Source: Macrostomum lignano (lineage: Eukaryota). Taken from it: a stretch of DNA of 64,000 bases. Under the pieces are notes generated by a model. That model saw nothing but the letters and a program-made list of their open reading frames with translations. It did no database searches and was not told the origin of the DNA. The position numbers were made by a program, and so were the translations under genes. The stretch lies in assembly GCA_002269645.1 (NCBI GenBank), contig NIVC01001887.1, forward strand, positions 191,092 through 255,091, written 5' to 3'. The first letter of the stretch is position 1. The number at the start of each line of letters is the position of its first letter. Positions 2,903 to 62,455 of this stretch are shown here, one piece after another.

Positions 2903-16363
<13,461 letters not shown>

Positions 16364-22357: not shown

Positions 22358-34831
<12,474 letters not shown>

Positions 34832-42266: not shown

Positions 42267-43799
42267 TTTTCCCTACCCGTACAAGGGCAACCTGACTGGG
42301 CAGACCGGTGATAGAAACTGGGCTGTTCCATCCATTCTGACTGGGCAGCCCGGCTGGATTTCAAAGGATTTCAACGCTTGGCAACGAAACTGAACGAGCG
42401 GTTCCGCTTTGGGTTCTCGCTGTCCCACATAAGCCCGCTAATACTATGATTATTAAGTTGCGTTACAGAGGAAAATCCACTGGGTGGAGCACTTCATAGC
42501 ATCTCCGAGAGCAAAGAAAATTCCATCTTGGATCCCTCTTTTCGAGTCGGGGATCTGACCAACCATGAGATTGATTGAAGAAAACAGAGAAGGAAAGATG
42601 GGGCGATGCAGAAGACCCTGTGCAGTGCTGGGCAGAGGTGGGAAGCTGGAGGCTGAGTAAAAGCGAGTCTCTGTACAGTTTGCACTGATCTACTCAGGTT
42701 AGTCCACCTCTCTCTTTCTCTCCCCCACTCTGTACACTGCATGCTCCTGCTTCAGCTCAGAGTGTACACTGAGAGAGCCTCTACTGAAAAGAGAATGAAT
42801 ACAAAAAGCGTCTCAGCGGGACTGGCAGGGAGAGGCAGCAAGATAATCTAATCTGATTCGAGTGCTCAAACAGCCCTGTCAGTTGCTCGTGCTGCAACCA
42901 GTAAAGAAGGTATTGCCGGTAATGCTCAAGGCAACAACCTCCTTGCTTAGGTAAGTTAATTGTGCATGCACTAGCATGCACAGCGGAATACAGCCTTAGT
43001 TGCTTTACTGTGACAAGCACTGAAAAATACAAAAACCGGCACAAACGTTCTGCCTACCCTGGTCAACCCCAAGGATCAGATTTCGTTTCTTTACATTCAG
43101 AATTGCCTGTTGGTACTTGGACCGCTGCTCAAAGCCTGCTACCCGAAACTGCCTATCCCGTATTGCCTGCAGATGGGAAAGTTAGAACGCTTTTCATTAA
43201 CAATTACGATAGTTCGGGATATTGTCCCTGTGCTATCGGTGATAGTCAGTGTCTGATATTGATATTAGTTCAGAACAGGTTTATAACTTTTATAGAAAAG
43301 GACCTCGATTTGCTCAGAACAATGTTCCTACCAAGCATGCTCTTGCACGGCCAAAAACCGACAGAAGAAAAGACACATGCTCAAAATTTGAGCAAAGTTT
43401 TCAAACTTTGTCTGGTATCTCCGCTGACTCACCTGCACAAACAATAGACGCGAAAGCCAGCAGGTAAGGCCTGATAAAAGGCCCGTGGCAGATTATGCTG
43501 CATTTCGAACGAGCACAAAAAGCACAGTCAAACAAACATGTTTCTTACAGCAAGTAAAATGATTTTACGGCTCGTAGATCCCCAAAAGCATTTTCTTCTC
43601 TTCAGGACAGAGTAAACATTGTTCCATCCTCGTTCTGAAAGCCAGATCGCAGGGATTTTATTGCTTGAATTCTCCAAAAACTGGAATTTCTCCCAGAAAA
43701 TCTCCGGTCTGCATCCTGCATTACAAAAATGTGTTGGAAATCAGTGCTGCCATTCGTCCCCATCCAATGTTTTCAGGAGCATCCAAAAGGAACGAAAAA

Positions 43800-44960
43800 A
43801 TGCTACGGTTTTGCCGCCTCCACCGGATTCAATGTACAGCCGCAGTACTTCTGCTCACTTTGCTGAGTCTTCTTAGCTTCTTCTTCTGGAGCGAAACAGA
43901 AATTGCAGTTAACACTGCAGAATCAAACATCCAACTCCAACCACAACGCCATCTCAAGCCAGCAAGCCAAATCAAAGACCGACCTGCGGGACCACCCAGG
44001 ATCTCCTTCGGCACGAAATACTTCGGCGACAACTCCGGCTGGAAGGATTACACGACCCGGTGGCGAGAAAACGGTCAGCGGTCTTGCGGATTTGACTGCG
44101 ACATTGTGCCCGACCCCGCCATTGCGGACGCCGTGCTGTTCCACGGCCGAGACCTTCCGTCGAAGCCCCCGAAACTGCAGCGAAAATACTGGCAGTACTG
44201 GGTGTACATGAACATGGAGTCACCTTTGTCTACCAAGTCGTACGGCTATGACGTTTCGTCAGCTCCCGCCTACAGATTCCTGTTCAACTGGACCGCCACC
44301 ACCATGCTGGAGAGCTCGGTGCACATGCCCTACGGAATGTGGAGCCTACGCGACAAGCCGGTCGAGGGTCCGTTCTACTCGCCTCAGAAGAAGCGCTACA
44401 TGGCGTACATCGCATTCTCGAACTGCAAGTACTCCTACAATGGGCGCGCCGAAAAGATTGCGGAGCTCAAACGCTACATCGATGTCCACGTGTATGGGAA
44501 ATGCGGCGACAGGGCACTCCCGAAGGACTGGAATGTGTGGCGAAAGATCTCAGAAGAGTACCGCTTCTACCTGAGCTTCGAGAACGCTTTTTGTCGCGAC
44601 TACATCACGGAGAAGTTTCACAACAACGGGCTGGACTCGCAGGCAGTGCCAGTAGCCTTCGGCGGCCTGTCTCGCTCGGACTACGAGCGGGTGAGTCCTC
44701 CGGGCTCGTTCGTGTATGCGCTGGACTTTCCGAGCATGCGGCAACTGGCCGAACACTTGAAGCAGCTGGCTGCTGATGAAGCGCAGTACGCCAGCTACCA
44801 CGAGTGGAAGAAGCGCTACGAGATTTCGCCTCGGTCTGACCTGCTTTGCGGCACCTGCGCCCGGCTGCACAAGGACCGCTCGGTTGGCGTGTTCGACCTG
44901 AGCCGCTTCTACGACATCAAACGCAACTGCCGCCCTTCCTACTACAAGTACCTAGTCTGA
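43800..44960 (+). CDS. Alpha-1,3-fucosyltransferase (GT10), type II membrane protein, single coding exon, 386 aa
   Basis: N-terminal TM AAVLLLTLLSLLSFFFW, ADAVLFH, WVYMNMESP, FNWTATT, and the alpha-1,3-FucT motif YRFYLSFENAFCRDYITEKF..VPVAFG; upstream TTTTCAG acceptor suggests a 5' UTR intron or trans-splice site. Confidence 0.95.
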   Translation: MLRFCRLHRIQCTAAVLLLTLLSLLSFFFWSETEIAVNTAESNIQLQPQRHLKPASQIKDRPAGPPRISFGTKYFGDNSGWKDYTTRWRENGQRSCGFDCDIVPDPAIADAVLFHGRDLPSKPPKLQRKYWQYWVYMNMESPLSTKSYGYDVSSAPAYRFLFNWTATTMLESSVHMPYGMWSLRDKPVEGPFYSPQKKRYMAYIAFSNCKYSYNGRAEKIAELKRYIDVHVYGKCGDRALPKDWNVWRKISEEYRFYLSFENAFCRDYITEKFHNNGLDSQAVPVAFGGLSRSDYERVSPPGSFVYALDFPSMRQLAEHLKQLAADEAQYASYHEWKKRYEISPRSDLLCGTCARLHKDRSVGVFDLSRFYDIKRNCRPSYYKYLV

Positions 44961-45872
44961 GATAACGAGTTTGCTTAAGGCAACGCTTTGTACTCTCGTT
45001 AATGCCACGACTTCTACTGCAATGCAATCCAATCAATGCAAATGCAATCCTGCAATCTTATGTAAGCTTTCCTAAGTTCAGAAAAGGAACCATTTTATTT
45101 GATTAGTGGTGGAAGCTTTGGACCAAGAGCTATCGCGTACCCAGATTTAAAATGATGCCTGGGTCAGGCAATCCTCTTCTGAAGCCGCATCCGCAGTCAT
45201 TTATCCATTCGCGGTGCGGTTCTGGAATTCAGCTACGAGCTAATCACCAAACATGGAAAACTATTGTCCTGATTTCTTTTCAGTCATGTACATATTTAAA
45301 TCAGGGCTGCTTGCTGTATGTATTTTTCTGTTTCGCATCCTCAGAATCAGCGGTAGTTTTACATTCCGATCTGGGAGCAGTCAGTAACTTTTGACCGCTT
45401 AAATATAGTAAAAGTTGTTGAATTTTTATTGCGCAACATGATTGCATATCACAGTTTTTTGCAGTTGTACTTTGTTTTACTAGTTTTGAAAGTGAGTTGT
45501 TGCACACAAGTGAATAAATTTTTTTATAAAACAAGTGGTTTATCGCACTACAAGCGAGTGAAACCTTAAGTTTCCAATTTAAAGGCAAAAAATTTTTCCA
45601 GTATCGAAATAGCGTAAATAAAACTTTCTGCTCTAAGCGTTTTACCCGACTGCGTTCGTATGAGCATCGTCGGGTATTTTTGAGCAACAAGGCAAACAAA
45701 CCAGTGGATTGGCTCTCCAGCCAACAGCCGGGCTACACGCACTGGCTGAAGCTGCAGCAACCAGGATCGAAGCAAACGCACATTCTGGACTCCAACGAAC
45801 TCAACACCAAGGATTCGTGCACTTGCGGGACAGTGCCGAACCACTGATATACAGGTACAGCCTTGCTGTAGG

Positions 45873-46502
45873 CTAGCGGTCCTTGGTCCGTGCCGAAGAC
45901 CACTAGACTTGGCTGCATACTAGTAGTCCTTGGTCCGTGCCGAAGACCACTAGACTTGGCTATATACTAGTAGTCCTTGGTCCGTGCCGAAGACCACTAG
46001 ACTTGGCTATATACTAGTAGTCCTTGGTCCGTGCCGAAGACCACTAGACTTGGCTGTATACTAGTAGTCCTTGGTCCGTGCCGAAGACCACTAGACTTGG
46101 CTATATACTAGTAGTCCTTGGTCTGTGCCAAATACCACTAGACTAGGCTATATACTAGTAGTCCTTGGTCCGTGCCAAAGACTACTAGACTTGGCTATAT
46201 AGCTAGTAGTCCTTGGTCTGTGCCAAATACCACTAGACTTGGCTATATACTAGTAGTCCTTGGTCTGTGCCAAAGACTACTAGACTTGGCTGTATGTATA
46301 CTAGTAGTCCTTGGTCCGGGCCAAAGACTACTAGACTTGGCTGTATGTATACTAGTAGTCCTTGGTCCGTGCCAAAGACTACTAGACTTGGCTATATACT
46401 GATTCAAATACTATAAATTAGACTTGGCTATATACTAGTAGTCCTTGGTACGTGTCAAAAGACTATTAAGACTTGCTGTATGTCAGTGGTCCTTGGTCCG
46501 TG
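45873..46502. repeat. 47-bp minisatellite made of a 39-bp micro-MITE plus an 8-bp spacer
   Basis: Unit = CAAAGACTACTAG-ACTTGGCTATATA-CTAGTAGTCCTTG + GTCCGTGC, ~12-13 copies. Confidence 0.9.
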
Positions 46503-47869
46503 TCTTTTCCGCTTGTTCGCTCATATTGAGGCTTGAGGCCTGTATGTAAATTTATATATCTGACTTGCTTATAAGATAAATAGCGTACAACACTAGAAAA
46601 TATTGTAATGCATAAAGATTGTACCAGGTAGCACTTCAATATTGAGAATTTTGTTCCTTTGTCAATTTTTAACCCACAAGAACGAAAATAAAATTATTTT
46701 ACTACATTAATATTATGACTGTGCTAATACTGATATTATTACTGAAAAGGAGTGCAAAGGGCTTACAATCACAGCAGTTAGTCAATGAAAATTGTGTCGT
46801 GGCCTGCAGCCGTTTCACTGGCAGTCTTCTCGCTGAAAATGGCATGTCTTAGCCTCATTAAGCCGAGTTTCTCCTTGGGCTGAGATACAATCCTAGAGCA
46901 AATATGAAGGCAGCATAATGCGGTGTTTTTATCAAAGATCAGGTGCGGCATTTCCTGGAAAATTCTATTCTTGCTTGAGGCCTGCGAGGTCCTAAAATCT
47001 GAAGCCACTGAAGCCGCTAAGCTATTTCGATGTCAGAGAGGCTTGGTACAGCTGTTAATGTTCATTGGTTTAAAGAAGCAGATCGCCAGAACCTCTTAAC
47101 TGCGAAAACGACAACCAAGGACGAGAAAGACGGTTTTTATCAATATTATGTTGACCTGTTAGTCGCTTGAGTATTCTATGGTGCTGCACATTTTCGCAAC
47201 CTTTGTTGGAACCTCACTGCCCCATCTCTCCCAAAAACCATGACTATCATTTAGCTTTTTGGCTACGCGCTAAAATCCGGATCTCTTCAATTTGGTTGAA
47301 GTCTCACAGTTTCGGCAGAGCGGAGCGGCAATTATTGCCAGTGCAGCAATCAGCTCTCCAGCTCCCCGCAAAAGCCTCAGCGGGAAAATGCAAATCGCAA
47401 CTGTTGTTGCTTCCGAGAAGTACAAACGGACAGAATTTGACCTAGTCCGTTCGAACTCGACCCCCCCTAGTTCAGCTGTGGAAGAGTGGAGTTCGCACAG
47501 GACTCATCCTATCGCTATCGCGCGATTCTCACAGATCCTCATCTCTTATTTATTGCCAGCAGTCTCCACACTGAGCTCAGCGGTTCCAGTGGAGCGTTGC
47601 GGAGTCGAAACTGTTTCGTCCGCACACAGTTGCTGCTAGAAATCCCGATACCGGTGAGTTTTTTCAAGATCGGTCAAACACGAGAGTATTGCAGTTACAG
47701 TGTATATGTATTTAGTCTGAATTCTCAGTCAAACTCAGAACCCTTAGGACTCCAGAAACGTCATGAGACGTCATCGCAAGGCTTTACCAGGGTACCGCAC
47801 GAGTTCACATCTTCCTTGAGTTTGTGTGAACCTCCACTACCAGTAGCCCTTTCGTTAGATTTTTCAAGC

Positions 47870-48190
47870 ATGGAGTAGTTGTAACCTAGTGGTTAGAGCG
47901 TCGGACTCACGACTTGAAGGTTGGGGGTTCGATTCCCGATCCCACTGGAACAGTTCGTGTCCTTGAGCAAGGCACTTATCTCTGCATTGCTTCAGTTTAC
48001 CCAGCTGTAAAATTGGTGCCAGCATTAGCTGGGGTAATTGAGGGTGTGTGTGGCGACCCCCCCAGTCCTTGGACTGAATAGCCGCACGCAACCTTCAGAT
48101 GCGCCGCGCAATAGCTGCGGCTGAGCTGTCGGTTGCACAGCTGGCCCAACTGGAGCAGGTGTAATCAATTATTATTTATTATTATTATTC
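47870..48190 (+). mobile_element. tRNA-derived SINE with CORE-like domain (copy 2) ending in (TTA)n
   Basis: Colinear with 24947-25235; A/B boxes; GTGTCCTTGAGCAAGGCACTTATCTCTGCATTGCTTCAGTTTACCCAGCTGTAAAA. Confidence 0.87.
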
Positions 48191-48339
48191 TTATGATCAA
48201 GCATGAATAATAATTGTGAAGATTGGGCGTAATCTACATACACAGTAAGCGGGTGACGCCAGGGTGTACAGTAGCGCCAATGACTTGCTGTCTAAATTCC
48301 CAGGAAGTCCCAGACACAGTCGGCAGCACAAAGTCCCCA

Positions 48340-48861
48340 ATGACCAGACTCAACTTCGTGAAGGAGGCAGGCGGCCTTTATGGGCAAAACTTGGCCAACG
48401 GGCTGACCTTCGGGATAACAGCGCTGCACAACTGGGCCACCGGCTGCCCCTGGCGCCTCGACAGCATCGGCTTCACCGTCCCGTTCGCCATATTCAACGT
48501 GGCCGCCTTTGTCGCCCTGCTGCCGTTCGCCTTCGACTGCTGCCGCCGTGGCTGCGGACGCCAGCAGCGTCGCCAAGCGCTGGTCGGCGTGTTCGCCGCG
48601 CTGTCCATCGTAGGCGCCCTGATGTCGCTCTCTGGCTTCTGCCTGTTCCTCAACGATAGACTGCTCACAGATGAAGCAGAGTTCATCAAGCGCGGCGGGG
48701 CCTGCAGAGACAGCCAGAGCAGCGCGAACCTGCCCGGCTCTCTGTACACGGCCAGCTCCGCCTACTCGGTCTTCCTGCTGATCGCGGCGAGCGTCACCTG
48801 TTGCACCAAGCGGCGGCCGCTTCGCTTTCTGGCCACGGACGAGGCGCCCGTGTCCATGTGA
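48340..48861 (+). CDS. Four-TM membrane module 1 (unknown family); probably continues by splicing at 48857
   Basis: ATG 48340, 3-4 hydrophobic segments, GCPWRL motif, TDEA near the end; the stop lies inside a GTGAGG donor. Confidence 0.7.
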   Translation: MTRLNFVKEAGGLYGQNLANGLTFGITALHNWATGCPWRLDSIGFTVPFAIFNVAAFVALLPFAFDCCRRGCGRQQRRQALVGVFAALSIVGALMSLSGFCLFLNDRLLTDEAEFIKRGGACRDSQSSANLPGSLYTASSAYSVFLLIAASVTCCTKRRPLRFLATDEAPVSM

Positions 48862-48904
48862 GGCTTGAGCAATTTTCTCCAAGTTCCTTGAAATGATTTG
48901 ATGG

Positions 48905-49208
48905 CCTGGCGCAGACCCGTCTGTACCAACCAATCGTCCCTCAGATTCCCTGGCGCAGACCCGTCCGTACCAACCAATCGTCCCTCAGATTCCCTGGCGC
49001 AGACCCGTCTGTACCAATCAATTGTCCCTCAGATTCCCTGGTGCAGACCCGTCTGTACCAACCAATTGTCCCTCAGATTCCCTGGCGCAGACCCGTCTGT
49101 ACCAACCAATTGTCCCTCAGATTCCCTAGCGCAGACCCGTCTGTACCAACCAATTGTCCCTCAGATTCCCTAGCGCAGACCCGTCTGTACCAACCAATTG
49201 TCCCTCAG
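48905..49208 (+). repeat. 44-bp minisatellite (7 copies), each carrying the TTGTCCCTCAG acceptor
   Basis: CAG at 48942, 48986, 49030, 49074, 49118, 49162, 49206. Confidence 0.92.
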
Positions 49209-49797
49209 ATTCCCCAAGAACAGAAAGCCCAGCAAGTCGGTGCTCGGCGGCATTCTCTCACTCACGGGTCTCGTCACCGCCTGCATCTGCGCCGCCTTCT
49301 TGGCCTTTGACTGCCCGGACTGGCGGCTCGGCTTCACCTGCTGCCTGGCCATCGGCTGCTTTTTCATCGTCTGCGGCTTCGTGGCTCTGCCGTTTTGCAA
49401 GAAAGACTTTCACTCTTCCGCCAGCTACCCGCCGCTGTTTGTCGCCTGCCTGACCCTGGCGGCCGTTTGCCACTGCCTGTCCTGGGGCGGCGCTGCTGTC
49501 GCTTTTGTCAGCTACGGCGGCAGCTCAGGCCAAGTGGGAGTTGGCGACAGCGCCAAGATGTGGATGGCCGTCCATCACAGCCGCAACTTCACGCTGCAGA
49601 ACTACGAAGACGTGTGCAACGGCGGCAGCACCTACCTCGCCATCGTGTCAGTTCTGCAGGTCCTGCTCTCCGCTGCCTACCTGATCGCTCTGGCCGTTCT
49701 GTACTACCAATTCGAGAGACTTCCGGTGAGCAGGTCAACTGATGAAGCCGAGGCGGCAGTAGCGTCCGAAGATGCGGAGGCGGCTGAGGAAAGGTGA
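49209..49797 (+). CDS. Four-TM membrane module 2 (no own ATG before TM1; likely internal exon 49209-49793)
   Basis: Four clear hydrophobic helices, DCPDWRLG motif, Cys-containing loop 2, acidic tail with TDEA; phase-2 acceptor and phase-2 AG|GTGAGC donor. Confidence 0.72.
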
Positions 49798-50428
49798 GCA
49801 ATTATTAAGAGTATCAAAGTGCTTGAATATTGAAAATGCTGAAGTATTGCAGGACCCAGTCAGCATGAATCTGTAGCTGAACCCATTTCCCGAATACATG
49901 GAGCACAAGAAATATGCGGCAAAATCTCTCGCAACTGGCCTAAAAGAAAGCCAACTTTCCGACTTTATTCAAGCCCTATTGCGACTTTATACAAGTTTGC
50001 AATAGTCGCTCATATATACATGTAAATTGATACTAGTGGCTCATATATATATTTACTTTTATACTAGTGGCTCATATATTACATACTAGTGGCTCATATA
50101 TACATACTAGCGGCTTCTGCCTCAGTCCCACTACTAGAGAACTTCTCTGCGAAACCGAGGCTGGTCCATCGCCCGATTCACTGCAGATCCCATACTAGAG
50201 CCGCTCAGCCATCTCTCTGGCCCAGCGAGCCAGAATTCGTTTCCGAAACATATCAGGGATGGCCCGAGAAGCGCATCAATCAAACAGAGTCAAAACCCGC
50301 CGCTAAGCTAATCCATCCGCCCGGCTTGCTGAAAGCTGGCTGTTGAAACTCTATTTTTAAAAGAATTTTTAAACGAGAGTACATATTACTGCTATTGGGA
50401 TAATATACGTATATAATGGGGACCCAAA

Positions 50429-50749
50429 ATGCAACATAAATTCATGTGCACTCAAATTCATGTGTGCTCAAATTCATGTGCACTCAAATTCATGTGTGCA
50501 CTTCATGTGCGCTCAAATTCATGTGCACTCAAATTCATGTGCACTCAAATTCATGTGCACTCAAATTCATGTGCACTCAAATGCATGTGCGCTCAAATTC
50601 ATGTGCACTCAAATTCATGTGCACTCAAATGCATGTGCGCTCAAATTCATGTGCACTCAAATTCATGTGCACTCAAATTCATGTGCACTCAAATTCATGT
50701 GCACTCAAATGCATGTGCGCTCAAATTCATGTGCACTCAAATTCATGTG
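50429..50749. repeat. 16-bp minisatellite (TGTGCACTCAAATTCA), continuing at 53146-53230 after the LTR element
   Basis: Same unit on both sides of the retroelement. Confidence 0.93.
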
Positions 50750-53145
50750 TGTAGTGCGCTTGTGTAGGTGCAGAAGTTAGGCTCTCATGGCCGTATATTT
50801 AAGCATTATATATACTAGTGAGCACAACGAGCTAGTGAGCACAACGTGCCACTGTTGCGTAATAGTGCGAGGGCGTACACGCACGTGGGGGAAGGCTAAA
50901 GTGAGAGAGCGAAGGAGAGACCCGCAATAGCAGTGCACTACATCTCTCCCCCAACCAAAAAAGTACAAAGCCTTAGAATTAGGAAGTAGAAATTAGATAA
51001 CTTCGCAGGTTAAGCATAACCAAACTTAAACATTTGATACATTTAAGTAAATTTATGTAATTTGCGCATATGTAATTTGTTCAATTAATAGAGCCCGGCT
51101 GTGCTGCTGTGGCATTGTGTCCCGCTGACGTGTTGCTGCTCAGCCGGTGGACTTCCAATAGCCAATCGCACAGCTTCGGTTACTTGCTGGCGCAGCGCCG
51201 ATTGAAATTAGCGGCGCGCCGTCTGGTCACCAGCTTCTAGTCGCGCTCTGACGACTGCTGAACGTCTCCTGCTGTGTCTGCCATCCGCTGTTGGCCGGCT
51301 GGGAGTGTCTCGCGCGCGTCACCGCCTCCGATGTTCTGGTGCAGGCGTCGCCTTGACAGAGCCGCCTGCGCCTGCCGGACCATGCCGGGCCACCAGACCT
51401 CCTTCCGCAGCCGGTCGATGGCCTTTCTCCTGCCGAATTGACCCTGGTGGGCCCAACTGATGGTCTGCTGCTGAAGCGCTGCGGGTACAACGATCCTGCC
51501 GCCCCTGAGCAGCATGCCGTCCCGCACCAGAAGCTCTCGCTTGAGCGAGTGGAAGCTGCTCGCCTGGGCTGTAGCGCCGAAGCGCCAGTTGCCAGTCGCC
51601 AGCGCCTGCATGACGAAGTTCAGAGCCGGGTCCCGAGCAGTGGCCTCGCGGATGCTGTTGTTGGTCGGGCCTTCCAATGCGAACTCGCCGGTGCTGAGCT
51701 GCTGCAGCGATACTCTGTCGTGGGCTGGTTGCTCGTCATTAAGAGCATCGGTCAGACTTGTAGCCTCTCTGGCCGGTGCCCGGGCCTGCGTCTCCAGACT
51801 CAGCAGCTGCAGGGATGTAGAGGTTGCACGGCCGAGCACACTGATGCCGCTACCGGGGACGATGATGAAGCTGGCCAGCTGAACCCTCGGGCCAACTGAG
51901 ACTCGCAGGCTGCAGACTCCCCGAGTGCGCAGAGGTTTTGCTGAGCGATATGGGAAGATCCTCTTTGTCGTCGGCTGCAGGCCTGGGGGCCCCGGGAGCT
52001 TCCGCCAGGCTGCCTCGGTGAGGATGTTACAGTCGGCTCCGCTGTCCACCAGCACCTGCACTGGAGTCGCTTCTACCAGCACGGTAGCCAGAGCCGCTGT
52101 CGCGCTCGTGTCAGAGGCCATCACGGTAAGGCAGAAGACGTCGTCCTCTTCACCTAAACTGTCGCTGCCGACTCGCAGAGCTCGCACGTCCTCTGGCCTG
52201 GACAAGCAGGCCTTGGCGAGGTGATTCGGCTTGCCGCATCGGTTGCAGGTCTTGCCTACCGCTGCGCTGCAGCTGCGGTGGCCGAAGTTGCCGCAGCGAA
52301 TGCACTTTGGCTGCTTGCGATCGGCTGTCTGTGTGGCTGATTCCTGCGGCTGCTCTGGCGGGCTGGACTCGCGCTTGCGCAGCCGCTGCACGGTCGCTGC
52401 GCTGGTCTCTATGAGGCTGGCCTGCGACTCCGCTGCCTCCATGGCCCTGGCCACCCGAAGCGCCTGCTCCAGGTCGACGTTGTCGATCGCTAGCAGCTTG
52501 CGGCGAAGCTGCTCTGAACTGCAGCCGGCGATCACCTGGTCACGGATCAGGGAGTCTCTGAGGCCCTCGAAGCCGCAGCAGTCGGCAGCATCTTTGAGGC
52601 GCTGGAGCCATTCGTCGATGGGCTCGCCAGACCGCTGCGTGCACAACCTGAACTGATAGCGGGTGAACGGGAGATTCCGCTTGCTGTCGAAGTGGTCGTT
52701 AAGCGCGGCTACGAGTGTTTCAACGTCTTTGCCTGCTGCCTCTTTGTCGCCGAGACCGGCCACAATCGTCTGCAAGTCCTCTCCGGCTGTATACAGCAAA
52801 AGCTGGCGAAGCCGCTTTTTGTCTTCGATGTTTGCAGCCACAGCAAAAAGTTCAAATTGTGCGTACCACTTTTTCCATTTGGTCTGAGCCGTGTTGGGGT
52901 CTGTTCGCAGGTCCAAGCGCGCTGGGCTTGGTAAGTTTAGCTGCGACGCCATTGTAGTGCGCTTGTGTAGGTGCAGAAGTTAGGCTCTCATGGCCGTATA
53001 TTTAAGCATTATATATACTAGTGAGCACAACGAGCTAGTGAGCACAACGTGCCACTGTTGCGTAATAGTGCGAGGGCGTACACGCACGTGGGGGAAGGCT
53101 AAAGTGAGAGAGCGAAGGAGAGACCCGCAATAGCAGTGCACTACA
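50750..53145 (-). mobile_element. Non-autonomous Gypsy-type LTR retrotransposon, 2396 bp
   Basis: Two apparently identical 193-bp LTRs (50750-50942, 52953-53145; TGTAGTGC...GCACTACA), 5-bp TSD ATGTG, PBS-like TGGCGTCGCAG next to the 5' LTR, polypurine tract GGGGGAGAGA next to the 3' LTR. Confidence 0.96.
51237..52952 (-). CDS. Gag - aspartic protease - integrase zinc-binding fragment ORF (571 aa); no RT, RNase H or IN core
   Basis: Gag (IRDQVIAGC), knuckles CIRCGNFGHRSC and CNRCGKPNHLAKAC, protease VLVDSGADCNIL, then GMLLRGGRIVVP..AHQGQFG..LRKEVWWPGM; no YxDD or DDE core. Confidence 0.9.
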   Translation of the reverse strand: MASQLNLPSPARLDLRTDPNTAQTKWKKWYAQFELFAVAANIEDKKRLRQLLLYTAGEDLQTIVAGLGDKEAAGKDVETLVAALNDHFDSKRNLPFTRYQFRLCTQRSGEPIDEWLQRLKDAADCCGFEGLRDSLIRDQVIAGCSSEQLRRKLLAIDNVDLEQALRVARAMEAAESQASLIETSAATVQRLRKRESSPPEQPQESATQTADRKQPKCIRCGNFGHRSCSAAVGKTCNRCGKPNHLAKACLSRPEDVRALRVGSDSLGEEDDVFCLTVMASDTSATAALATVLVEATPVQVLVDSGADCNILTEAAWRKLPGPPGLQPTTKRIFPYRSAKPLRTRGVCSLRVSVGPRVQLASFIIVPGSGISVLGRATSTSLQLLSLETQARAPAREATSLTDALNDEQPAHDRVSLQQLSTGEFALEGPTNNSIREATARDPALNFVMQALATGNWRFGATAQASSFHSLKRELLVRDGMLLRGGRIVVPAALQQQTISWAHQGQFGRRKAIDRLRKEVWWPGMVRQAQAALSRRRLHQNIGGGDARETLPAGQQRMADTAGDVQQSSERD

Positions 53146-53253
53146 ATGTGCACTCAAATTCATGTGCACTCAAATTCATGTGCACTCAAATTCATGTGCA
53201 CTCAAATTCATGTGCACGCACTCAAATTCATATACACTCCCCGCGCTTTTCAG

Positions 53254-54247
53254 TCAAGAGGCGAATGCGCCGCCGCCCACAGACCCCGAGCTTGGCGCGA
53301 GGTCCATCGGCGCCAGCGGGCTCTGCCTGGCGCTCTCGGGCAGCGCCGGAGTCGTCGCAAGTGCCGCCTACCTCTGCCTCAGCTGTCCTTGGCAGCTGGG
53401 CGGCCTGGTCAGCAGCTTGGTGCTCGGCCTCATCCTTGTCGCAGCCGGAGCTCCCGCGTGCGCCCTGCTTCAACGACGGCACTTTGCCAGGTCTGGCAGC
53501 CTCATTCCCGCCATCATCGGGCTGACTGCCGTCTGCATCTGCGTGTCGCTTTGCCAGCTGGTGTTCATGGTGACCGAGCTGGGGGTCATCAAGTCCAGAA
53601 AGTGGGCCCAGCAGCTCCAGGGGGAGCAGTCGGTCCTGCTGTTTTATGCCGAGGTTCCGCCTCAAAGGAATGAAGAAATCTGCGAAACTCGGTCGCTGTT
53701 TCTCATAGTTTATGGCGTTGGGACATTTGGCCTGTGTGTTGTGCACCTTATTCTGGCCTCCTACTGCTATCACTTCTTCAAGAAGCAGCGGGGTCTGGCT
53801 GTCACTGCTGATGCTGTCTCTTCTGAGGCTCAGGAGACACCTGGAGCTACGGCCGAGGCGGGTAAGCAGGCTGGCAGCGGTGAGGCGGACAATGAGTCAG
53901 AAGACAAAAATACGCCAGCCAATCAGGAGGAAGATGAGTCAGCGGACAAGATGACGCCAGCCAATCAGGAGGATGATGAGTCAGCGGACAAGACGACGCC
54001 AGCCAATCAGGAGGATGATGAGTCAGCGGACAAGACGACGCCAGCCAATCAGGAGGATGATGAGTCAGCGGACAAGACGACGCCAGCCAATCAGGAGGAT
54101 GATGAGTCAGCGGACAAGACGACGCCAGCCAATCAGGAGGATGATGAGTCAGCGGACAAGACGACGCCAGCCAATCAGGAGGATGATGAGTCAGCGGACA
54201 AGACAACGCCAGCCAATCAGGAGGATGAGTCAAGCTACCCCAAATGA
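53254..54247 (+). CDS. Four-TM membrane module 3 (no own ATG before TM1) with acidic 14-aa repeat tail
   Basis: TTTTCAG phase-2 acceptor at 53253, four hydrophobic helices, SCPWQLG motif; tail SADKTTPANQEDDE x7-8 may instead be intronic after G|GTAAGC at 53861. Confidence 0.72.
53911..54232 (+). repeat. 42-bp tandem repeat (in frame with module 3)
   Basis: GACGCCAGCCAATCAGGAGGATGATGAGTCAGCGGACAAGAC, ~7-8 copies. Confidence 0.93.
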
Positions 54248-54774
54248 GCACAAGCAGTCTGTCGCTGACTTTTAATAGCAAATTCGGCAATTTTTATTTT
54301 GTTTTTTCCTAAGCACAAATTTTAGCTATGCTATTAGACACAATACTGAAAACTAATTTCTTCAAATTATTCAGCACATCTAGTAGCCACTATTGATAGC
54401 ACAACGTTTTAGTCGCAAAACTAGCTTACATATTTTATAAATGCTAAAGGCTTTAAATAACTTTATTTTGTATTAATTCTGAGCCTTTTATGCAAAAGTC
54501 ACATTAGAAACGCTTAAACCGCATGTTAATGGAAAGTACAGCTTAGCTACCAAAATTTTTTCAATGCATAGCACTATTTGAAATTTTTTACTCTCGAAAG
54601 GTTATTAGAAATTTTATATCTCTACCGTACAAAAATCGCTAATGTTATCAATTAAGAATATTATCAACATTAGGAATTTTTAAGCGAATATTTCAAGACC
54701 ACTGAATTATCCGATTTTACCTACGGTACCAGGTTTCAATAGTCCATGACCAGAAGTGCTCAGAGTTGGTAGTC

Positions 54775-55530
54775 CCCAGAGTAGAGTAAAGCTTGCAGAG
54801 TCGAGAGTCAGGATCCCCAGAGTCAGGACCCCCAGAGTCAGGAGTCCCCAGAGTCAGGACCCCCAGAGTCAGGAGTCCCCAGAGTCAGGAGTCCCCAGAG
54901 TCAGGATCCCCAGAGTCAGGACCCCCAGAGTCAGGAGTCCCCAGAGTCAGGAGTCCCTCAGAGTCAGGAGTCCCTCAGAGTCAGGAGTCCCCAGAGTCAG
55001 GAGTCCCCAGAGTCAAGAGTCGAGAGTCAGGAGTCCCCAGAGTCAAGAGTCGAGAGTCAGGAGTCTCCAGAGTCAGGAGTCCCCAGAGTCAAGAGTCGAG
55101 AGTCAGGAGTCTCCAGAGTCAGGAGTCCCCAGAGTCAAGAGTCGAGAGTCAGGAGTCCCCAGAGTCAAGAGTCGAGAGTCAGGAGTCTCCAGAGTCAGGA
55201 GTCCCCAGAGTCAAGAGTCGAGAGTCAGGAGTCTCCAGAGTCAGGAGTCCCCAGAGTCAAGAGTCGAGAGTCAGGAGTCTCCAGAGTCAAGAGTCGAGAG
55301 TCAGGAGTCTCCAGAGTCAGGAGTCCCCAGAGTCAGGAGTCCCCAGAGTCAGGAGTCCCCAGAGTCAAGAGTCGAGAGTCAGGAGTCTCCAGAGTCAGGA
55401 GTCCCCAAAGTCAGGAGTCCCCAGAGTCAGGAGTCTTCAGAGTCAGGAGTCCCTCAGAATTAGGAGTCCCTCAGAGCTAGGAGTCCCTCAGAGTTAGGTG
55501 TCAAGAATCAGGAATAGCGAGAGTCAGGAG
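54775..55530. repeat. Compound minisatellite of GAGTCCCCA / GAGTCAG / GAGTCAAGAGTC subunits
   Basis: Direct inspection. Confidence 0.92.
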
Positions 55531-55582
55531 TCGAGTTGAGCACATGTCTTTCTCAAGCTGTTTTATTCATAAACATTTGCAG

Positions 55583-56198
55583 CATCGGCAAGCCGATGGC
55601 CCGAGCCACCAAGATACCGGTTGCCGCGGAGTCGTTGACCGGAGGATTCCTAGCTGCAATCGGGATTCTGGGCACCGGCGCCATCCTGGTACTGCTGGTG
55701 CCCAAGGGAATCAGTGGAACCTCGCTGGGCCTGGTCTGCCTCTGCCTGGTGCTGGGAGTCTTCAGCACCGTCTGCGGCTGCCTGTCGTTCCCGCTGTGCC
55801 GCAGCGACTACGCCAGGCTGGGCTGGTACCCGCGGCTCACCCTGGCCAGCGGCCTCCTGGCCACCTGTTGCTTCTGCCTGTCCGGGGCTGGCATTGTGGC
55901 GGTCATGTTCGACTGGGTTCTGTGCGATCAGTCGATTCGCGAGCTGGGCAAGGACTGCGGCTTCCCCTTCATTCTGCTGGGCAGCTTTCTGCTGTTTGAG
56001 CTCGTCTTCAGCCTGGTGCACATGGCCGCGCAGCTGGCCGTGCTGTTCAGGATCGTCAAGCACTCGGCCTGCCCTGGTGAGGCGGGCGCCGGTCAGGAGG
56101 CCGACAAAGAGGAAGACGGCAAGGAAGATGACGGAGCGGACTTGGATCAAGATGAAGGCGAGGCTGATGAAGCGTGCAGCGAGGCCGGCTCGTCTTAG
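55583..56198 (+). CDS. Four-TM membrane module 4 (own ATG at 55596 or spliced via acceptor at 55582), acidic tail
   Basis: Four hydrophobic helices aligning with module 2 (C..L..G.F..VCG....P.C..D......YP.L), Cys pair in loop 2, EADKEEDGKEDD tail. Confidence 0.75.
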
Positions 56199-57844
56199 GA
56201 AATCTTAGCAGAGAAACACCTCTAGACCCTTGAAGATACTTTGTTTTTCGTATATTGAAAATCTGTCAATTTCCTGTTGCAATCGTCAGTGATATTTATC
56301 AAAAGCTGGCTTCTGTTTCACCTTTGCTTTTCTTCTTTCTGGTAGCGTTAAAACTTTTTGAGGAGGGAAAGAAGAGAGTTAGTCAAAAGGCCTCGTGTAG
56401 TGCATGTAGACAGTGCATGTAAACTACATGTAGTGCATTAGAAATGTAAGTGCAGCCAAGAGCCAACAGAAAGCTGAGGAAATTCATGCTTGACGTCAGA
56501 GTCAGGCATTGAGCCCGGCAGCGCGAGGGAAGATGTTGAAGCGTTTTGCGGGGGCAGCGACAACTCTTTACTCACTGAAGAGGCGGGTGATTAAACAAAG
56601 GATTAGGCCTTCTTTCATCTGAGATGCTGGGGTTTCAAGTCAGGCAAAAAATGTTTTGCCAATGCTTGACTGTCAATCGATGGAGTGGAAAATTTTGAAA
56701 AGCCAATAGCCTGGTCTCCATGGCTACCACGGCGGGAGAAGGAGAAGAGGGCGGGGCCAGAAACCAGAAGCTGTCGTATTGTTGGTTGAGTTGGTTGTGT
56801 TGACTGCATTGTTGGTTGAGAGGCATTATTTTCAGGAAATTTCTGCTTCTCTCAATCCCTCATAGTTTTGTGCAAGATGCAGGCAGACCTGCTCCTCGAA
56901 CTGTGAGTGTCAGTCAAGTCTTCAGTCAGGCATCCCTGTAGTGTGTGTTGAAGTTACGGTTAGGCAAGATGAATTCAGAGCAAAACACTTTTTTGTTGCG
57001 CTGACAGTTCTAGAAAAAAAAAGAATCGAGCGATTTGTTTATATTTGCTTCATCTACGGAAATTCGGATCAGACGCCGAACTTACAGAATTGAGTGATAA
57101 ATAATTTTGAAAATAGCAGATTAGCAGAGGTTAGGAGAGTATATAAATATGAATTTTTGCCTGCGTAGAATATTTGCCCAGCGTCTTTAATGGAAAAAGC
57201 TTGAAAACATTGCATTGTCTCAAAGAGTTGAATTTTGGCTTCCAGCCTTTTGCTTTTAGCATTCATTTCCGCGCTTCTGTTCAACCCGGAAAGTAAGCTT
57301 CAAGCCAGTGGCAGCCTCAACGCAGACGGAGAGCCAGAACAGTAAAAAACCAAAGAATAATTTTTTTAAAGTTTTGCCAAGGCGAGTACAGGTGGCGGCT
57401 TCACGATGCATTCACAAGAGAGCCTCCAGTCTTTGGCTTTCATACGCAAAGCAGCTGGTACTTTTTAGGAATGCATTGATGATAGAAGGCTTTGAGTAAG
57501 GAAAAAGCAGTGGAAAAAGTTTATGCTTAATAAGTACGAGAGAAAAAATAATCAAAGATATTTCTGTCGTAGACAAAATATAAAATTCATGCGGTCCCGC
57601 ACGCATGACCTTACCATTCCAAAATAAAGAAGCATTAAATATTTCCAACCATTAGCTGCTGGGATCCTATTGCTGAAAGAGGAAAGGTAGAACTTGCCAC
57701 TTTTCTAATGCACCGCTACATTTTTTTGACCAAACACTCTCCCCAGCAGTTTAAAAATCATCCAAGCGTAATGTCTTTTATAAAAATGTTTAAGAACAGC
57801 GAAAAGTTCTTTCATGATTGACGAAAACTCCACCCCTTCCGCGT

Positions 57845-58591
57845 TTAGCCGAATGGGGACTGGCACTCGCACAGACCTTCGCTATTGCTTGGCGACATGT
57901 CGGACAGCCGTTCCCTTCCGTTATAAGCAGCGAGCAAGCCTTGTCCTCCGGAGTCGTCATTGGGCTCGCCATCGCTCCAGAGGTTGCTGCTGACGGTGTT
58001 GTTGCAGCCGACCCAGTACCAGCCGCCATCAGGCTCAGCGCTGCCGGGCGCCTGAAATCCTCCTAGCCACAGAGTGTTTCTGCTCCCATGGAGTGACCTC
58101 ACGTGCTTTATGTGCTCCAATTCTTCCATGCTCATCACGTCCGCCATGATCACCAGACCGCTCTCCGACTCGCATGTCGATTTTATGTCATTCCACGAGC
58201 CGCTGACCACCTTGTACTTGACTCCGCAGAAGTCGTCTCCGTATCCGGACGGACACAGCCGTCCCGCCGGCAGTCCCGGCTGCTGCCTCACGAACACCCG
58301 GCCTCGTCTCGAGCAGCCGCAGTCCCTCACAGACTTGCTGCACTTGTTGAACTCGAACAGCTGGCACGGACCGTCGGACAGGCTGTAGGCCTGGCACTGC
58401 GGTCTCAGGCCACACAGGATGGCGCAGTGCTCCACCGATGTAACTCCAGTGATGTTGCGGACGAAGTCGCTGTTGATGCACAGGGAGCCGTTGATGGGAG
58501 TGAATCTCAGGGAGCAGGCCTGGCTGCTCAGAGCAGAGCTCAGCAGTGATAAAAAGACGAAGCAAACCAGAAGGCTGCCAATTTCATACAT
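57845..58591 (-). CDS. Secreted PAN/apple + C-type lectin domain protein, intronless, 248 aa
   Basis: Signal peptide, PAN-like EHCAILCGLRPQCQAYSLSDGPCQL, CTL motifs WNDIKSTC, LWLGG, GWYW, WSDGEPND, GLCEC. Confidence 0.9.
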   Translation of the reverse strand: MYEIGSLLVCFVFLSLLSSALSSQACSLRFTPINGSLCINSDFVRNITGVTSVEHCAILCGLRPQCQAYSLSDGPCQLFEFNKCSKSVRDCGCSRRGRVFVRQQPGLPAGRLCPSGYGDDFCGVKYKVVSGSWNDIKSTCESESGLVIMADVMSMEELEHIKHVRSLHGSRNTLWLGGFQAPGSAEPDGGWYWVGCNNTVSSNLWSDGEPNDDSGGQGLLAAYNGRERLSDMSPSNSEGLCECQSPFG

Positions 58592-61093
58592 GCTTGTTGC
58601 CGTGCGGCTTGTTGCTAAGAGTAAATAGACTCACTTTCTTTATGTGCGATGGTGAGCTCAGGCAGGTGAGTTGCCGTTTTGCTATTGGATGAACCAGTAC
58701 TGACTCTCTTTACTTGCTGACTCAATTTTTCGTGCGTTCCATACCTTTATGGCTGCTTGGGTACCATTTAGATTGCCGTCTTTGCTTTTATAGAACAACT
58801 TATAATGATAAATTATATGATAATAATATTAATTAAATTTAATATGATATAAATATAAATTATAGTTCCATAAATAACGTTTCAGTGGGATATTTCTCGG
58901 AGGAAATCAACCCCTTTGCCCAGTGCCAGTGGTAATGCCTTCAATTGACGTCAACTTGATGCGGGGCACAGCCGTCAGGGACCTCAGGGACTCCAACTCC
59001 AACGCCAATGCCACGAAGGTCGAAAGCGCACGAAAATGCTCTTCTGATGCTCAGAACAAAATCCCTGCTCGGCGATCCGAACTCCGAAATTAGGTGAACG
59101 ACTGACAGTGTGAAAGAGCGCGGAGGACAGCAGAAGGACCTTCGTCCGGCCTAGCCAAGCCCGCTCAACTTAAACAAAGCATTTTTTCGCAGAAGCGTTG
59201 CGGCCGACATTATTAATGCAGAAAAAATATTCTGTAAAAATAACTTCAATATTCTTGTCAAACAGTAGTCAAACTGACTACCCTACTCTAACAGTAGGAA
59301 TACCAAGCCATGTTTCCTTCCGTCAAACTACCAAGCCCTGACAGTTTCTTTGCTGCGCCGGAACGGAGCAACGCAGGCACACGAAACTCAAGAACACGGG
59401 CTAACTTTTTGTTGCGCACCTTCTCAAACAAGAATCAAGTCGCCAGCCCTCCGGACCGTCGAGATATTCGACGATTCTGCCAGAAGGTCGGATTGGATTT
59501 TTCCCATAAGCGCCAGTGTATTCAGTACACCCCTGTGCGCCAATCAGCACTGCGCCTCAGTGCAGCCTTGCCAAGCCTCCAAATTTCAACAGCACGTCGA
59601 TCACATGTGTCTGCATCAGCTGTGACTTCGTTGGTCACTAGCCTTCACCCAGGCGGAGCTTCTGGACCTTCAACAGGTGGCACCAGGGGACTATGGAGAC
59701 CCTGATGCGAATTTCTCTAGTTTCGCCGATCAAGCCTCGACAGTGGGCAAGCCTCAACTGCTGGACGTGCATTCACTGTACACACGGCACCGATTATTTC
59801 TATTATCAGTAAGCAGTATCGTTCATGGAGAACAGCGAGATTTTTCCTTGCACAGCGTGTGACTGCAGCATCAAAAGCAGCAATTTTTGGACATACAGTT
59901 TTCTCCTCCTGCATCTTTCCGTCTTCTCAGGGGATGATAAAGCTTACCTGTCCATTTTAAAGAGCTTTCTAGTTGATCATTTATCATTCGCAATGCAGTA
60001 TGTGGTGTGTTCAATAAGAGAGGAACATTAAATGTCATTTAATCAATCGCAGATCGATCTCTGCGAGGCGGTCGTAGTGGCAGTGCGATTGCAAAAACTG
60101 CGTCCCCTACTTGGCAGGGATCAAGTAGTCTATATGGCAAAGGTTTTCATTTTTGCTCCCCCTCCCCAGGGCATTAAACTGGAGGCAGAGCAGCTCATTG
60201 GCTGTCTCTCCCGCTTCTCAATACCTGGGTTCGATTCCGTAAAGGCCACAGTGGTTCTTAATACACAATTACACACTAAGTCACTAGCCGAATGCGTAGT
60301 GACTTATCATGAAAATATTGAAAACAGTTAAGAATTCTTCGTAACTACAAGCGTGAATCTGGCACTTCCGCGAAATAACTTTTTTCCAAAATGCTATCAA
60401 TATTTAGAGAAGCAATGCTTTCCCTAAAAAATGAAATCAGGATCGATTTGGGTGGCGTCTAAATTCGCATCGGCGCGATGCATTGAAAGTTATGATGTGG
60501 AAATGGGAGAAATCTTCACTAGTTTGCTGGGTCTCCTAAGAATACCCGACTGCCTGCTGACGAAGACTGGGGGTTAGTCTGGCCACACAGCATGCGCTGC
60601 GGACTGCCTGCGCCTGCAGGAAGCGGGCTTCCATCTCGTGCGGGGCTTGTCTTCCCACTTTCTATGGATTATTCTGGGCTTCTGCTCAGTCTACGGCTTC
60701 CGCTCTTCGGCTTCCTGCCACTGGGTAAATGACAGAAAGATACTCAGTCATTTTTTCTTGTCTACAATACGTTTGCATGCCTGATTTGTCTGTTGAATAG
60801 AATTACAGACTTCTTAGAAGCAACTTCGCATTGTGCGGTCATGCGTCCCCGATCTGCAGTAAAATGCAGTTTGCGCAACACCAGCGTAATACGGCCAATC
60901 GAATGCAGAAGGGACAACGCGTGAAGAGGGCTGGGCTAGGCTGACCAGCCAAGAGAATACTGCTTCAGGAAAAATTAGAAAAGTTGTTTCAGATCAAAAT
61001 AGTTACAGAAGAATTAACAGGGCGGTTGTACTTTGTATGGAATTCCTTGAATAGAAGTTTGTATTGAAGTTGAAAATATAGTTATTTTCAGGC

Positions 61094-61647
61094 CATGTCC
61101 TACACGCATTCAATTTAGTCCAAGATATGTTTGTAAAAGTAGTGGAGCTTTTGTCTATGGTAGCAAGGGTGACACAGCAGCATTTATTTTGGTCTCACAG
61201 GCATCAATTTGATTCATAGCGACTATGAAACTCAATCATGAGTAGGCCCATGACTATGTACGAGTATTTAGATAATTCCCTTTATATGAGTAAATTTCAC
61301 TGTACCAATACAAGGTGACGTCAAAAATGTTGTCTGCTCAATTATAACAAAAAAGAGCATTTTAGCATGATCAAAAATCCACTTCGATCAAGTCCCATGG
61401 CGTTCGTTCGAAAGCCTAGTATATGGTCCACGAGTCTAGGGCTGATCCTGCTCCTCTTGCAAATGAAGCACTGCTTTCGTACTCGCTTCCTGTGACAGTG
61501 ATGTCTAAATGAAAATCTAGAGGTAAAACTATAGAGCAAATTCTGGACCCAAGCGAATGCTTCTTGGACAAAATTAAATGCTGCTGTGCCACCTCTGCTT
61601 TACTTTGACAACATATCTTGGATTAAATTAAATGCGTGTAGGTCCAT
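61094..61647. mobile_element. Small foldback/MITE-like element with ~85-100-bp imperfect inverted arms
   Basis: 61094-61194 is the reverse complement (with indels) of 61566-61647, e.g. CCTACACGCATT..AATTTA..CCAAGATATGTT and GCAGCATTTA. Confidence 0.65.
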
Positions 61648-61689
61648 TAGTACCGCTGCCAAATGACATGTCGGAATACTTGTCCCTTC

Positions 61690-61975
61690 CTGGGTAGGCA
61701 GCAATCAAGAAGTTCCCGTCTAGACTATTGCTTGGCTCGCCGTCGGCCCACAAGCTGCTGTCCACGGTGTTGTTGCAGCCGACCCAGTGCCAGCCCAAGG
61801 ACTACTAGACTAGAACTATAGCATTTCATGCAGTGGTCCTTGTGCCAGCCCTCTGCCGACTCCGCGCTGCCGGGCGCCTGGAAGCCTCCAAGCCACAATG
61901 AAGTTCCACCGTTCGAAGGGACTGCACCGAATTTATGGGCGCCATCTCTGCTATATCAGGTCAGCCATGCTCACC
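61690..61975 (-). pseudogene. C-type lectin relic, paralogue of 57845-58591
   Basis: Minus strand reads LWLGGFQAPGSAE..WVGCNNTVDSSLWADGEPSN; interrupted by a 47-bp insertion and cut off upstream by a MITE end. Confidence 0.85.
61796..61842. mobile_element. 47-bp micro-MITE inside the lectin relic
   Basis: CAAGGACTACTAG...CAGTGGTCCTTG with perfect 8-bp TSD TGCCAGCC (61788-61795, 61843-61850); the paralogues have a single copy of the site. Confidence 0.88.
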
Positions 61976-61977
61976 AA

Positions 61978-62160
61978 CAGGGGCGTTGCCATGGATTTTA
62001 TGGTGGGTGAGACAAAGCCAAGAATTTAACATCCACATGTACATGACTAATTCCTTCTAAATTTCCATTATTTTGAAAATCGTAGTCAAGGACCACTAGA
62101 AGTTACCGTTGTAGTGGTAACTTCTAGTGGTCCTTGATCGTTGTGTTGTCAGAATTAAGA
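61978..62160 (+). mobile_element. Left-end fragment of the MITE family seen at 38357
   Basis: CAGGGGCGTTGCCATGGATTTT..AGCCAAGAATTTAAC..TACATGACTAA..TTTCCATTATTTTG..AATCGT..GTTGTCAG is colinear with 38357-38460. Confidence 0.8.
62087..62136. mobile_element. 50-bp micro-MITE (perfect 21-bp hairpin arms) nested in the MITE fragment
   Basis: CAAGGACCACTAGAAGTTACC-GTTGTAGT-GGTAACTTCTAGTGGTCCTTG; flanks ATCGTAGT / ATCGTTGT (7/8 match). Confidence 0.85.
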
Positions 62161-62455
62161 CAGAAAGTTCAACATTTTGAAGAAAAAAGCAGTTAAAAAA
62201 CCCAACGCCTTGTGTACGTCAGTCAATATTTTGTTTCGGAGTTTGCTTTGAGAGTATTTTGCAGCGTCCAAACGTACGAGGACCTTCCCGCAACTTATTT
62301 ATTGTCAAAAGCCCAACTGACTGAAAAATCAGCAATACGAGCTCGTAAATTGAAATTCCACGATGTCTTTTGCATTTGTACTTTTTGCGTCGTTTTCAAG
62401 AATTCGAAAGGAGCATCAGTGTTATTAATTGCAGTCGGTCGAATTCCTGTTCAGT

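Follow-up and report, generated by a model that had tools for sequence, protein, structure and literature searches.

The DNA analysed here (hereafter the window, 64,000 nucleotides) is the last 64 kb of contig NIVC01001887.1 of the flatworm Macrostomum lignano (assembly GCA_002269645.1, Mlig_3_7), and a contig coordinate equals the window coordinate plus 191,091. Window positions 45584-64000 match the locus NIVC01001887.1:236675-255091 (L002) at 100%. Between positions 48340 and 56198, the window carries an array of four modules, each of which encodes a unit of up to four transmembrane helices. Their open reading frames (ORFs), all on the plus strand, span 48223-48861, 49198-49797, 53162-54247, and 55536-56198.

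Module 1 (48304-48857) is the most divergent of the four and the candidate first coding exon. It has in-frame ATGs at 48340 and 48280 and a candidate phase-0 acceptor at 48303/48304 (ttcccag/GAA GTC; slashes mark splice boundaries), and it ends in the donor AT/GTGAGG, with the intron beginning at 48858 and the stop of the unspliced frame at 48859-48861. Module 2 (49209-49793) ends in the donor AG/GTGAGC, where the intron begins at 49794 and the unspliced stop occupies 49795-49797. Module 3 (53254-54247) follows the phase-2 acceptor tttcag/T. Since its stop is an ordinary TGA without a donor, module 3 is read as a terminal exon; two donor-like sites within its tail are phase 1. An in-frame coding repeat (42 bp x 8, 53892-54228), encoding DESADKTTPANQED, makes the cytosolic tail of module 3 long and highly acidic. 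Module 4 (55583-56198) follows the acceptor ttgcag/C, which ends at 55582, and has its own ATG at 55596 and a TAG stop at 56196-56198; it is the sole window module with a gene model in the databases. A previous reading of the locus, made from the sequence only, had stated that modules 2 and 3 lack an ATG before the first helix. This holds for module 2 but not for the ORF of module 3, in which in-frame ATGs lie at 53162 and about 53210. Both of these sit in a 16-bp minisatellite ahead of the acceptor, and splicing would remove them.

The homology of the four ORFs, proposed in the same reading, was borne out by pairwise and profile comparisons. BLAST aligned module 2 with module 4 (E 5e-14) and with module 3 (E 6e-10), and module 1 weakly with the other modules (E 0.02-0.06). 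In leave-one-out hidden Markov model searches, modules 1, 2, 3, and 4 scored 18.6, 87, 56, and 76 bits, against a maximum of 11.5 bits among 1000 shuffles, with module 1 the lowest of the four. Hydropathy profiles gave four strong segments in each of modules 2-4 and three clear ones in module 1, and an AlphaFold2 model of module 4, built from a 7-sequence family alignment, has four long helices (predicted local distance difference test score 79, predicted template-modelling score 0.69); the earlier count of up to four helices per module agrees with both results. The shared loop and tail motifs listed at that time are all present. All four modules show coding periodicity, with a G+C content at third codon positions (GC3) of 0.72-0.85 and T-rich second positions, as in the neighbouring fucosyltransferase gene. 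The spacers are AT-rich with a GC3 of 0.30-0.42 and are devoid of periodicity. Exact protein look-ups with module 1, with module 4 translated from its ATG, and with the predicted spliced products of modules 1 and 2 gave no match.

A HMMER profile of the four window modules, run exhaustively against 1.84 billion representative proteins, retrieved three real clusters: P0001, which is module 4; P0002 (406 amino acids (aa), two modules, E 5e-29); and P0003 (214 aa, one module, E 1e-10). P0002 and P0003 are hypothetical M. lignano proteins in GenBank, P0001 lies on M. lignano contigs only, and the family has so far been seen only in this species. Since further modules lie around P0003, some of them unannotated and one, an annotated member of 231 aa, beyond the reach of the first profile because of its divergence, the family is larger than the profile search shows. 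The window modules belong to this orphan four-helix family by profile similarity over the four helices and by shared motifs: helix 1 has G-x6-G, loop 1 has GCPW or an equivalent, and loop 2 has an invariant Cys. 

Pairwise scores divide the family into two subtypes. Subtype A, with LP-x-C-[RK]-[RK]-D-[YF] after helix 2, comprises modules 2 and 4, the first module of P0002, and P0003 with its neighbours. Subtype B, with GCPW-x-L in loop 1, comprises module 3, the second module of P0002, and, weakly, module 1, which shares GCPW-x-LDS (GCPWRLDS in module 1) with the second module of P0002. The order is B-A-B-A in the window and A-B at the P0002 locus. The exon duplication suggested earlier is thus too simple a history, since two old, divergent subtypes alternate and standalone single-module genes occur elsewhere in the genome.

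The splicing habits of the organism bear directly on how these ORFs are read. About 30% of M. lignano genes receive a 35-nt spliced leader (SL), CGGTCTCTTACTGCGAAGACTCAATTTATTGCATG, which ends in ATG, and about 15% of genes lie in operons, whose spacers are rich in repeats; the trans-acceptor motif is YTNCAG, and cis donors are mainly GT[G/A]AG (PMC8629364). A downstream gene on the same strand is assigned to an operon if its SL acceptor lies less than 1 kb (repeat-adjusted) past the upstream gene (PMC8629364). The AUG of a flatworm SL can act as the initiator, and the part of PMC9851317 that cites Cheng et al. 2006 gives it as in frame in 28% of the trans-spliced mRNAs of Schistosoma mansoni. 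SL trans-splicing and operons in this organism therefore change the reading of ORFs that lie behind an acceptor and lack an ATG.

Both donors (48857/48858 and 49793/49794) and the three acceptors ending at 49208, 53253, and 55582 are phase 2. The sequence-only reading had placed these canonical sites and the stops embedded in the donors correctly, and the joins it had found open, 1-2-3 (698 aa) and 1-2-4 (572 aa), are indeed open. Since every phase-2 intron whose donor is GTGAG or GTAAG has an in-frame TGA or TAA at intron positions 2-4, the stop within the donor is not a separate coincidence. A 44-bp x 7 tandem repeat (48905-49214), with a copy of the acceptor tccctcag in each of its seven units, makes up nearly all of the putative intron 1 (48858-49208, 351 nt, phase 2). 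Only the last copy gives an open join; the frame from the upstream copies is closed by a TAG at 49171-49173. The putative intron 2 (49794-53253, 3460 nt, phase 2) contains an AT-rich spacer, a 16-bp minisatellite, and an inserted long terminal repeat (LTR) element. The predicted junction peptides of the spliced products are ...TDEAPVSIFPKNRK... and ...EAAEESQEANAPPP...

No GTRAG donor was found in the spacer between modules 2 and 3 outside the LTR element or in the spacer between modules 3 and 4, so the donors that end modules 1 and 2 are the only in-frame partners of the phase-2 acceptors. At the acceptors of modules 2 and 3, the AUG of the SL would open the wrong frame. As neither of them has a usable ATG, these modules are translatable only if cis-spliced to a phase-2 donor. 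First or standalone modules of the family have phase-0 acceptors with the SL AUG in frame (cag/CCC ATG at locus L003; cag/CCG CCG and cag/CCG TGT at locus L005); the cis-spliced second module of P0002 has a phase-2 acceptor like those of modules 2 and 3. Acceptors that would place the SL in frame can be drawn for module 2 (ccccaag/AAC, 49218/49219) and module 3 (caagag/GCG, 53260/53261), but they do not have the CAG/YTNCAG consensus and were judged unlikely. For modules 3 and 4, small private 5' exons were considered and rejected, since the spacers contain no GTRAG donor outside the LTR element. An origin as retroposed, SL-carrying mRNA copies was also rejected: the window holds no SL remnant, and the modules share no common nucleotide-level repeats.

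Covalent two-module proteins are real in this family, as seen from the transcript-derived annotation of paralogs. PAA89729.1 (P0002, 406 aa) and PAA71640.1 (P0006, 413 aa) come from two homeologous loci, and in both, splicing of a phase-2 intron links an A module to a B module. The P0002 gene has two exons on NIVC01000140.1 (L003). Exon 1 (10001-10617) ends ...CCG GAC TT/GTGAGT, and exon 2 begins after cccctccccag/C AAG GTC, giving ...PATNPD-F-KVFLPTD... in the protein; this makes the intron phase 2 and places the stop of the first module inside the donor. The P0006 gene (L007) has the same junction with the donor TT/GTAAGT and an intron of 851 nt. This G-to-A change turns the stop into TAA while keeping both the donor and the stop. 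The P0002 intron (693 nt) is nearly all tandem repeat with a copy of the donor in each unit, and the junction peptide of P0002 recurs in the UniProt fragments P0007 and P0008. The GenBank annotation was built from RNA-seq (STAR, StringTie, and TACO) and a de novo transcriptome, and its TBONE pipeline splits transcriptional units into genes at peaks of SL reads and at poly(A) sites (PMC5730564). Since the annotation was built from transcripts and cut in this way, the A-B junction would have spliced-read support, and the acceptor of the second module would not be a major SL site. The junction from module 2 to module 3 in the window is also A-to-B, the same type as that documented in P0002. The covalent tandem by in-frame splicing, as proposed in the sequence-only reading, is thus documented in P0002 and P0006; we infer the use of the junctions 1-2 and 2-3 in the window itself and the pairing of A and B.

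Both in the window (48905-49214) and in the two paralogous loci (L003 10618-11200; L007 10618-11350), the inter-module introns are made of tandem repeats in which the splice site itself is copied. Copies of the donor GT[GA]AGTGC number 18 in L003 and 21 in L007, and the annotated transcripts use the first donor at both loci.

Module 4 differs in its gene model. Its product, P0001, was found on two contigs of GCA_002269645.1. The annotated coding sequence is 5'-partial (IGKP...) and starts at 55584, the first full codon after the acceptor at 55582/55583 and 12 nt before the ATG. All four 5'-partial coding sequences of the family begin 0-2 nt past a CAG, the others being at L003 10001, L005 10001 (acceptor ending at 9998), and L005 5483. 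Such 5' ends are expected when TBONE cuts at an SL site and a 5'-partial ORF is called. Since the annotated 5' end coincides with the acceptor and the module has its own ATG, the best reading of module 4 is an SL trans-spliced mRNA of its own, with translation from the ATG at 55596. Its acceptor lies 1335 nt past the stop of module 3, and 729 nt of this gap are a 16-bp minisatellite (54804-55532, plus strand) directly upstream of the acceptor, in an intercistronic region or outron; the operon criterion of less than 1 kb is a repeat-adjusted one.

Two unannotated family members at L005 of NIVC01000140.1 (11826-12470 and 15910-16644) lack an ATG ahead of helix 1. With phase-0 acceptors (ctgcag/CCG CCG and cccgcag/CCG TGT), they would have the terminal AUG of the SL in frame; from these sequences, they are candidates for an SL-supplied start codon. 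The tails of these two and of L005 5483-6178 end in PPxY-like motifs (LPPTYEEAM, LPSYEDAV, and PPPCYDEAV) and would be expected to bind Nedd4-type WW-domain ubiquitin ligases; the window modules have acidic tails. At L005 6945-7780, a family module is broken by an expanded coding tandem repeat (CCSPQPP in one frame, LLLTAAS in another) and is annotated as a gene only over its C-terminal 74 aa.

We consider that modules 1 and 2, and probably 3, form one cis-spliced gene, that module 4 is expressed as a separate SL mRNA, and that the array as a whole consists of old paralogous single-exon modules, and we assign this reading a probability of roughly 55%. The first gene would have three exons, the first ending at 48857, the second at 49209-49793, and the third at 53254-54247; translated from the ATG at 48340, it would yield a protein of 698 aa with 12 helices, or, if it ended at the stop of module 2, one of 368 aa with 8 helices. 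In the second gene, the SL would be joined to 55583-56198 at the module 4 acceptor, which has no donor nearby and is followed 13 nt on by the module's own AUG, and the coding sequence 55596-56198 would give 200 aa. The spacers between successive modules, adjusted for repeats, are about 38, 680, and 600 nt. These short spacers make co-transcription as one operon-like unit plausible, and the whole array is probably transcribed in this way. Each unit is predicted to start and end in the cytosol, having an even number of helices, and concatenation would leave the topology unchanged. A fused A-B unit could act as a built-in covalent hetero-oligomer.

Several observations weigh against this reading. 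Modules 1-3 have no gene model in any protein collection searched. Module 1 is very divergent, and its helix 1 is weak in the hydropathy profile. The six decoy acceptors upstream in intron 1 would lead to frameshifted or stopped products, and intron 2 contains the 2.4-kb LTR element with identical LTRs. The AT-rich 600 bp past module 2 resemble the 3' untranslated region-like spacers after modules 3 and 4, so the gene may end at module 2. The homeologous contig NIVC01000004.1 (L001, 7600-8200) is without the equivalent of window ~47083-53466 (~6.4 kb); modules 1, 2, and the 5' half of 3 are gone, and what is left of module 3, at 3.9% divergence, carries a premature stop. At least one genome copy can therefore do without the corresponding part of the array. 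Between the window contig and L001, module 4 and the next 1.5 kb downstream show 100% identity, and the abrupt shift in divergence along L001 suggests gene conversion or a mosaic assembly.

These observations feed a serious, though on balance unlikely, alternative, in which only module 4 works, modules 1-3 are decaying or not transcribed, and an ancestral multi-exon gene has left them their splice-compatible ends. It would account for the single gene model, for the perfect conservation of module 4 beside a deleted or stopped remainder in the homeolog, for the recent LTR insertion and the minisatellites expanded at the splice sites, and for a degenerate module 1 and modules 2 and 3 without a start codon. 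However, the ORFs of modules 1-3 are wholly open over 173-330 codons with GC3 values (0.72-0.85) and T-rich second positions equal to those of module 4, the donors and acceptors are intact, and the absent annotation is explained by a repeat filter. Transcripts overlapping repeats were left out of the GenBank annotation set, and since the coding sequence of module 3 itself holds the 42-bp x 8 repeat, the missing models of modules 1-3 are weak evidence.

An ordinary operon, with four cistrons each released by the SL at its acceptor and translated alone without any fusion, is very unlikely. The repeat-adjusted spacers of less than 1 kb are of operon size, the acceptors of modules 3 and 4 fit YTNCAG, and the annotated 5' end of module 4 lies at its acceptor. 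Such cistrons would, however, leave modules 2 and 3 with the SL AUG out of frame and, after splicing, with no ATG before helix 1; neither AATAAA nor ATTAAA occurs in the 38 non-repeat nucleotides separating modules 1 and 2; and in the paralog, cis-splicing takes place at the homologous A-to-B junction. The full model of the sequence-only reading, one gene with combinatorial or alternative terminal exons and the products 1-2-3, 1-2-4, 1-3, and 1-4, is highly improbable: although every combination is open and the acceptor of module 4 is phase 2 like the internal ones despite the module's own ATG, this openness is automatic from the shared phase, module 4 has a gene model running from its acceptor and persists unchanged where modules 1 and 2 are deleted, skipping 3.5-6.7 kb over an intervening terminal exon has no precedent in the paralogs, and neither 1-2-4 and 1-4 nor 1-3 finds support.

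The cis-spliced gene with a separate module 4 mRNA invites a wider and distinctly doubtful proposal. An operon-like array might make proteins of 4, 8, and 12 helices, with each phase-2 acceptor taken either by the preceding donor, which would cut out the stop of that module and yield an A-B fusion, or by the SL, which would yield a module on its own; the subunits of a lineage-specific MS4A-like membrane complex would then depend on how cis- and trans-splicing compete. If the window junctions are used, the locus is a clear case of four-helix units of one exon each that are chained in alternating subtypes, while the same family also occurs as standalone units in the genome. It would be a natural system for studying the passage of small membrane proteins from non-covalent oligomers to covalent repeats and the way in which cis-splicing competes with SL trans-splicing within flatworm operons. 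Since part of the array is missing from the homeologous copy, its biological weight may be small. The locus also illustrates a pitfall of annotation: ORFs that lack an ATG and end in G-TGA-G are internal phase-2 exons and not genes, and flatworm genes without an ATG may draw their AUG from the spliced leader.

The LTR element in intron 2 (50750-53145, minus strand) is an internally deleted retroelement and not part of the gene family. Its two 193-bp LTRs (50750-50942 and 52953-53145) are 100% identical, which implies a very recent insertion, and its 571-aa ORF (51237-52952) encodes gag zinc knuckles, a protease, and the H2C2 zinc-binding domain of an integrase. The element sits inside a 16-bp minisatellite (ATGTGCACTCAAATTC), whose two parts now lie at 50438-50749 and 53146-53217. 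Minisatellites are very dense throughout the window (e.g. 8642-9497, 22422-24392, 38370-38939, and 41246-42311) and create long spurious ORFs in several frames, which complicates an ORF-based reading. Just upstream of module 1, at 47900-48100, a tRNA-like box B (GGTTCGATTCC) is present, and this stretch may be a tRNA-derived short interspersed element; the window is free of tRNAs according to ARAGORN. An intact single-exon GT10 fucosyltransferase gene (43767-44960, plus strand) lies 3.4 kb upstream of the array on the same strand and has no exact match in the protein look-up. Downstream, on the opposite strand, are two paralogous ORFs for cysteine-rich secreted proteins (57845-58591 and 62456-63225, both minus strand), which share about 86-88% DNA identity and have no Pfam match at E<=0.001.

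The fold of the modules was compared with known four-helix families. In a Foldseek search of the PDB with the module 4 model, the best match was Fc-epsilon-RI beta (MS4A2; E 0.06, template-modelling (TM) score 0.47-0.56), and CD20, synaptogyrin, sarcospan, and claudins were also retrieved. The MS4A2 and CD20 matches had E-values of 0.06-0.7 and TM-scores of about 0.5, synaptogyrin and the claudins scored similarly to the MS4A proteins, and no match had E<1e-3. Pfam searches with the four modules and then with nine modules gave no match above the cut-off, the best being CD20 (PF04103) at E 3.2 in one of the nine. None of the nine modules was matched by the Tetraspanin, TM4SF (L6), MARVEL, or claudin-PMP22 models at a limit as loose as E<=10, no PDB sequence came up at E<=10 in a profile search, and hhalign against a CD20 core, which was verified against PDB entries, gave a probability of 0.3%. 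A single-sequence AlphaFold prediction of the 406-aa two-module protein (predicted local distance difference test score 43) was unusable for the packing of A against B. The likeness to MS4A/CD20 or TM4SF proposed from topology thus survives only as a weak resemblance of fold to the former, since every sequence test failed, including that for TM4SF (L6). The family seems to have a general MS4A-like shape, and membership in MS4A is not established. No result of the analysis speaks for the channel or chemoreceptor role that the sequence-only reading had suggested as a possibility.

In their layout, the modules do recall the MS4A/CD20 family (CD20, Fc-epsilon-RI beta, and sarcospan; PF04103), whose members also have about 200 aa, four helices, both termini predicted in the cytosol, a short outer loop 1, a larger Cys-bearing outer loop 2, and acidic C-terminal tails. 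In contrast, no sequence relationship is detectable, and MS4A proteins are single modules that assemble non-covalently. A covalent tandem of two four-helix units is found in the MYADM-type proteins, in which two MARVEL domains in one chain form an 8-helix protein. Unlike the present array, however, these belong to another family, show no alternation of two subtypes, and do not encode each unit in one exon; synaptogyrin, a MARVEL protein, was a weak fold match.

The closest relatives are three uncharacterised GenBank proteins of the same family and organism: the two-module A-B proteins BOX15_Mlig010748g1 (PAA89729.1) and BOX15_Mlig021445g1 (PAA71640.1), which have the same type of junction, and the product of the single-module gene BOX15_Mlig023160g1 (PAA50981.1 and two further accessions). 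They come from other loci and are less than 35% identical to the window modules, and the two-module order is A-B in contrast to B-A-B-A in the window. Two-module proteins of the family are thus already present in GenBank as hypothetical proteins, and the literature search found nothing on them. The array resembles the SL operons of M. lignano in its same-strand genes, its short repeat-rich spacers, the 5' end of module 4 at a YTNCAG-type acceptor (ttgcag), and the existence of ATG-less paralogs with phase-0 acceptors that would take the AUG of the SL. It differs in that some adjacent cistron-like units of the family are cis-spliced in frame and not separated. Tandem chains of four-helix units are known elsewhere, as in MYADM, and what is unusual here is the coding of one module per exon, the way two subtypes alternate, and the interplay with trans-splicing of the SL.

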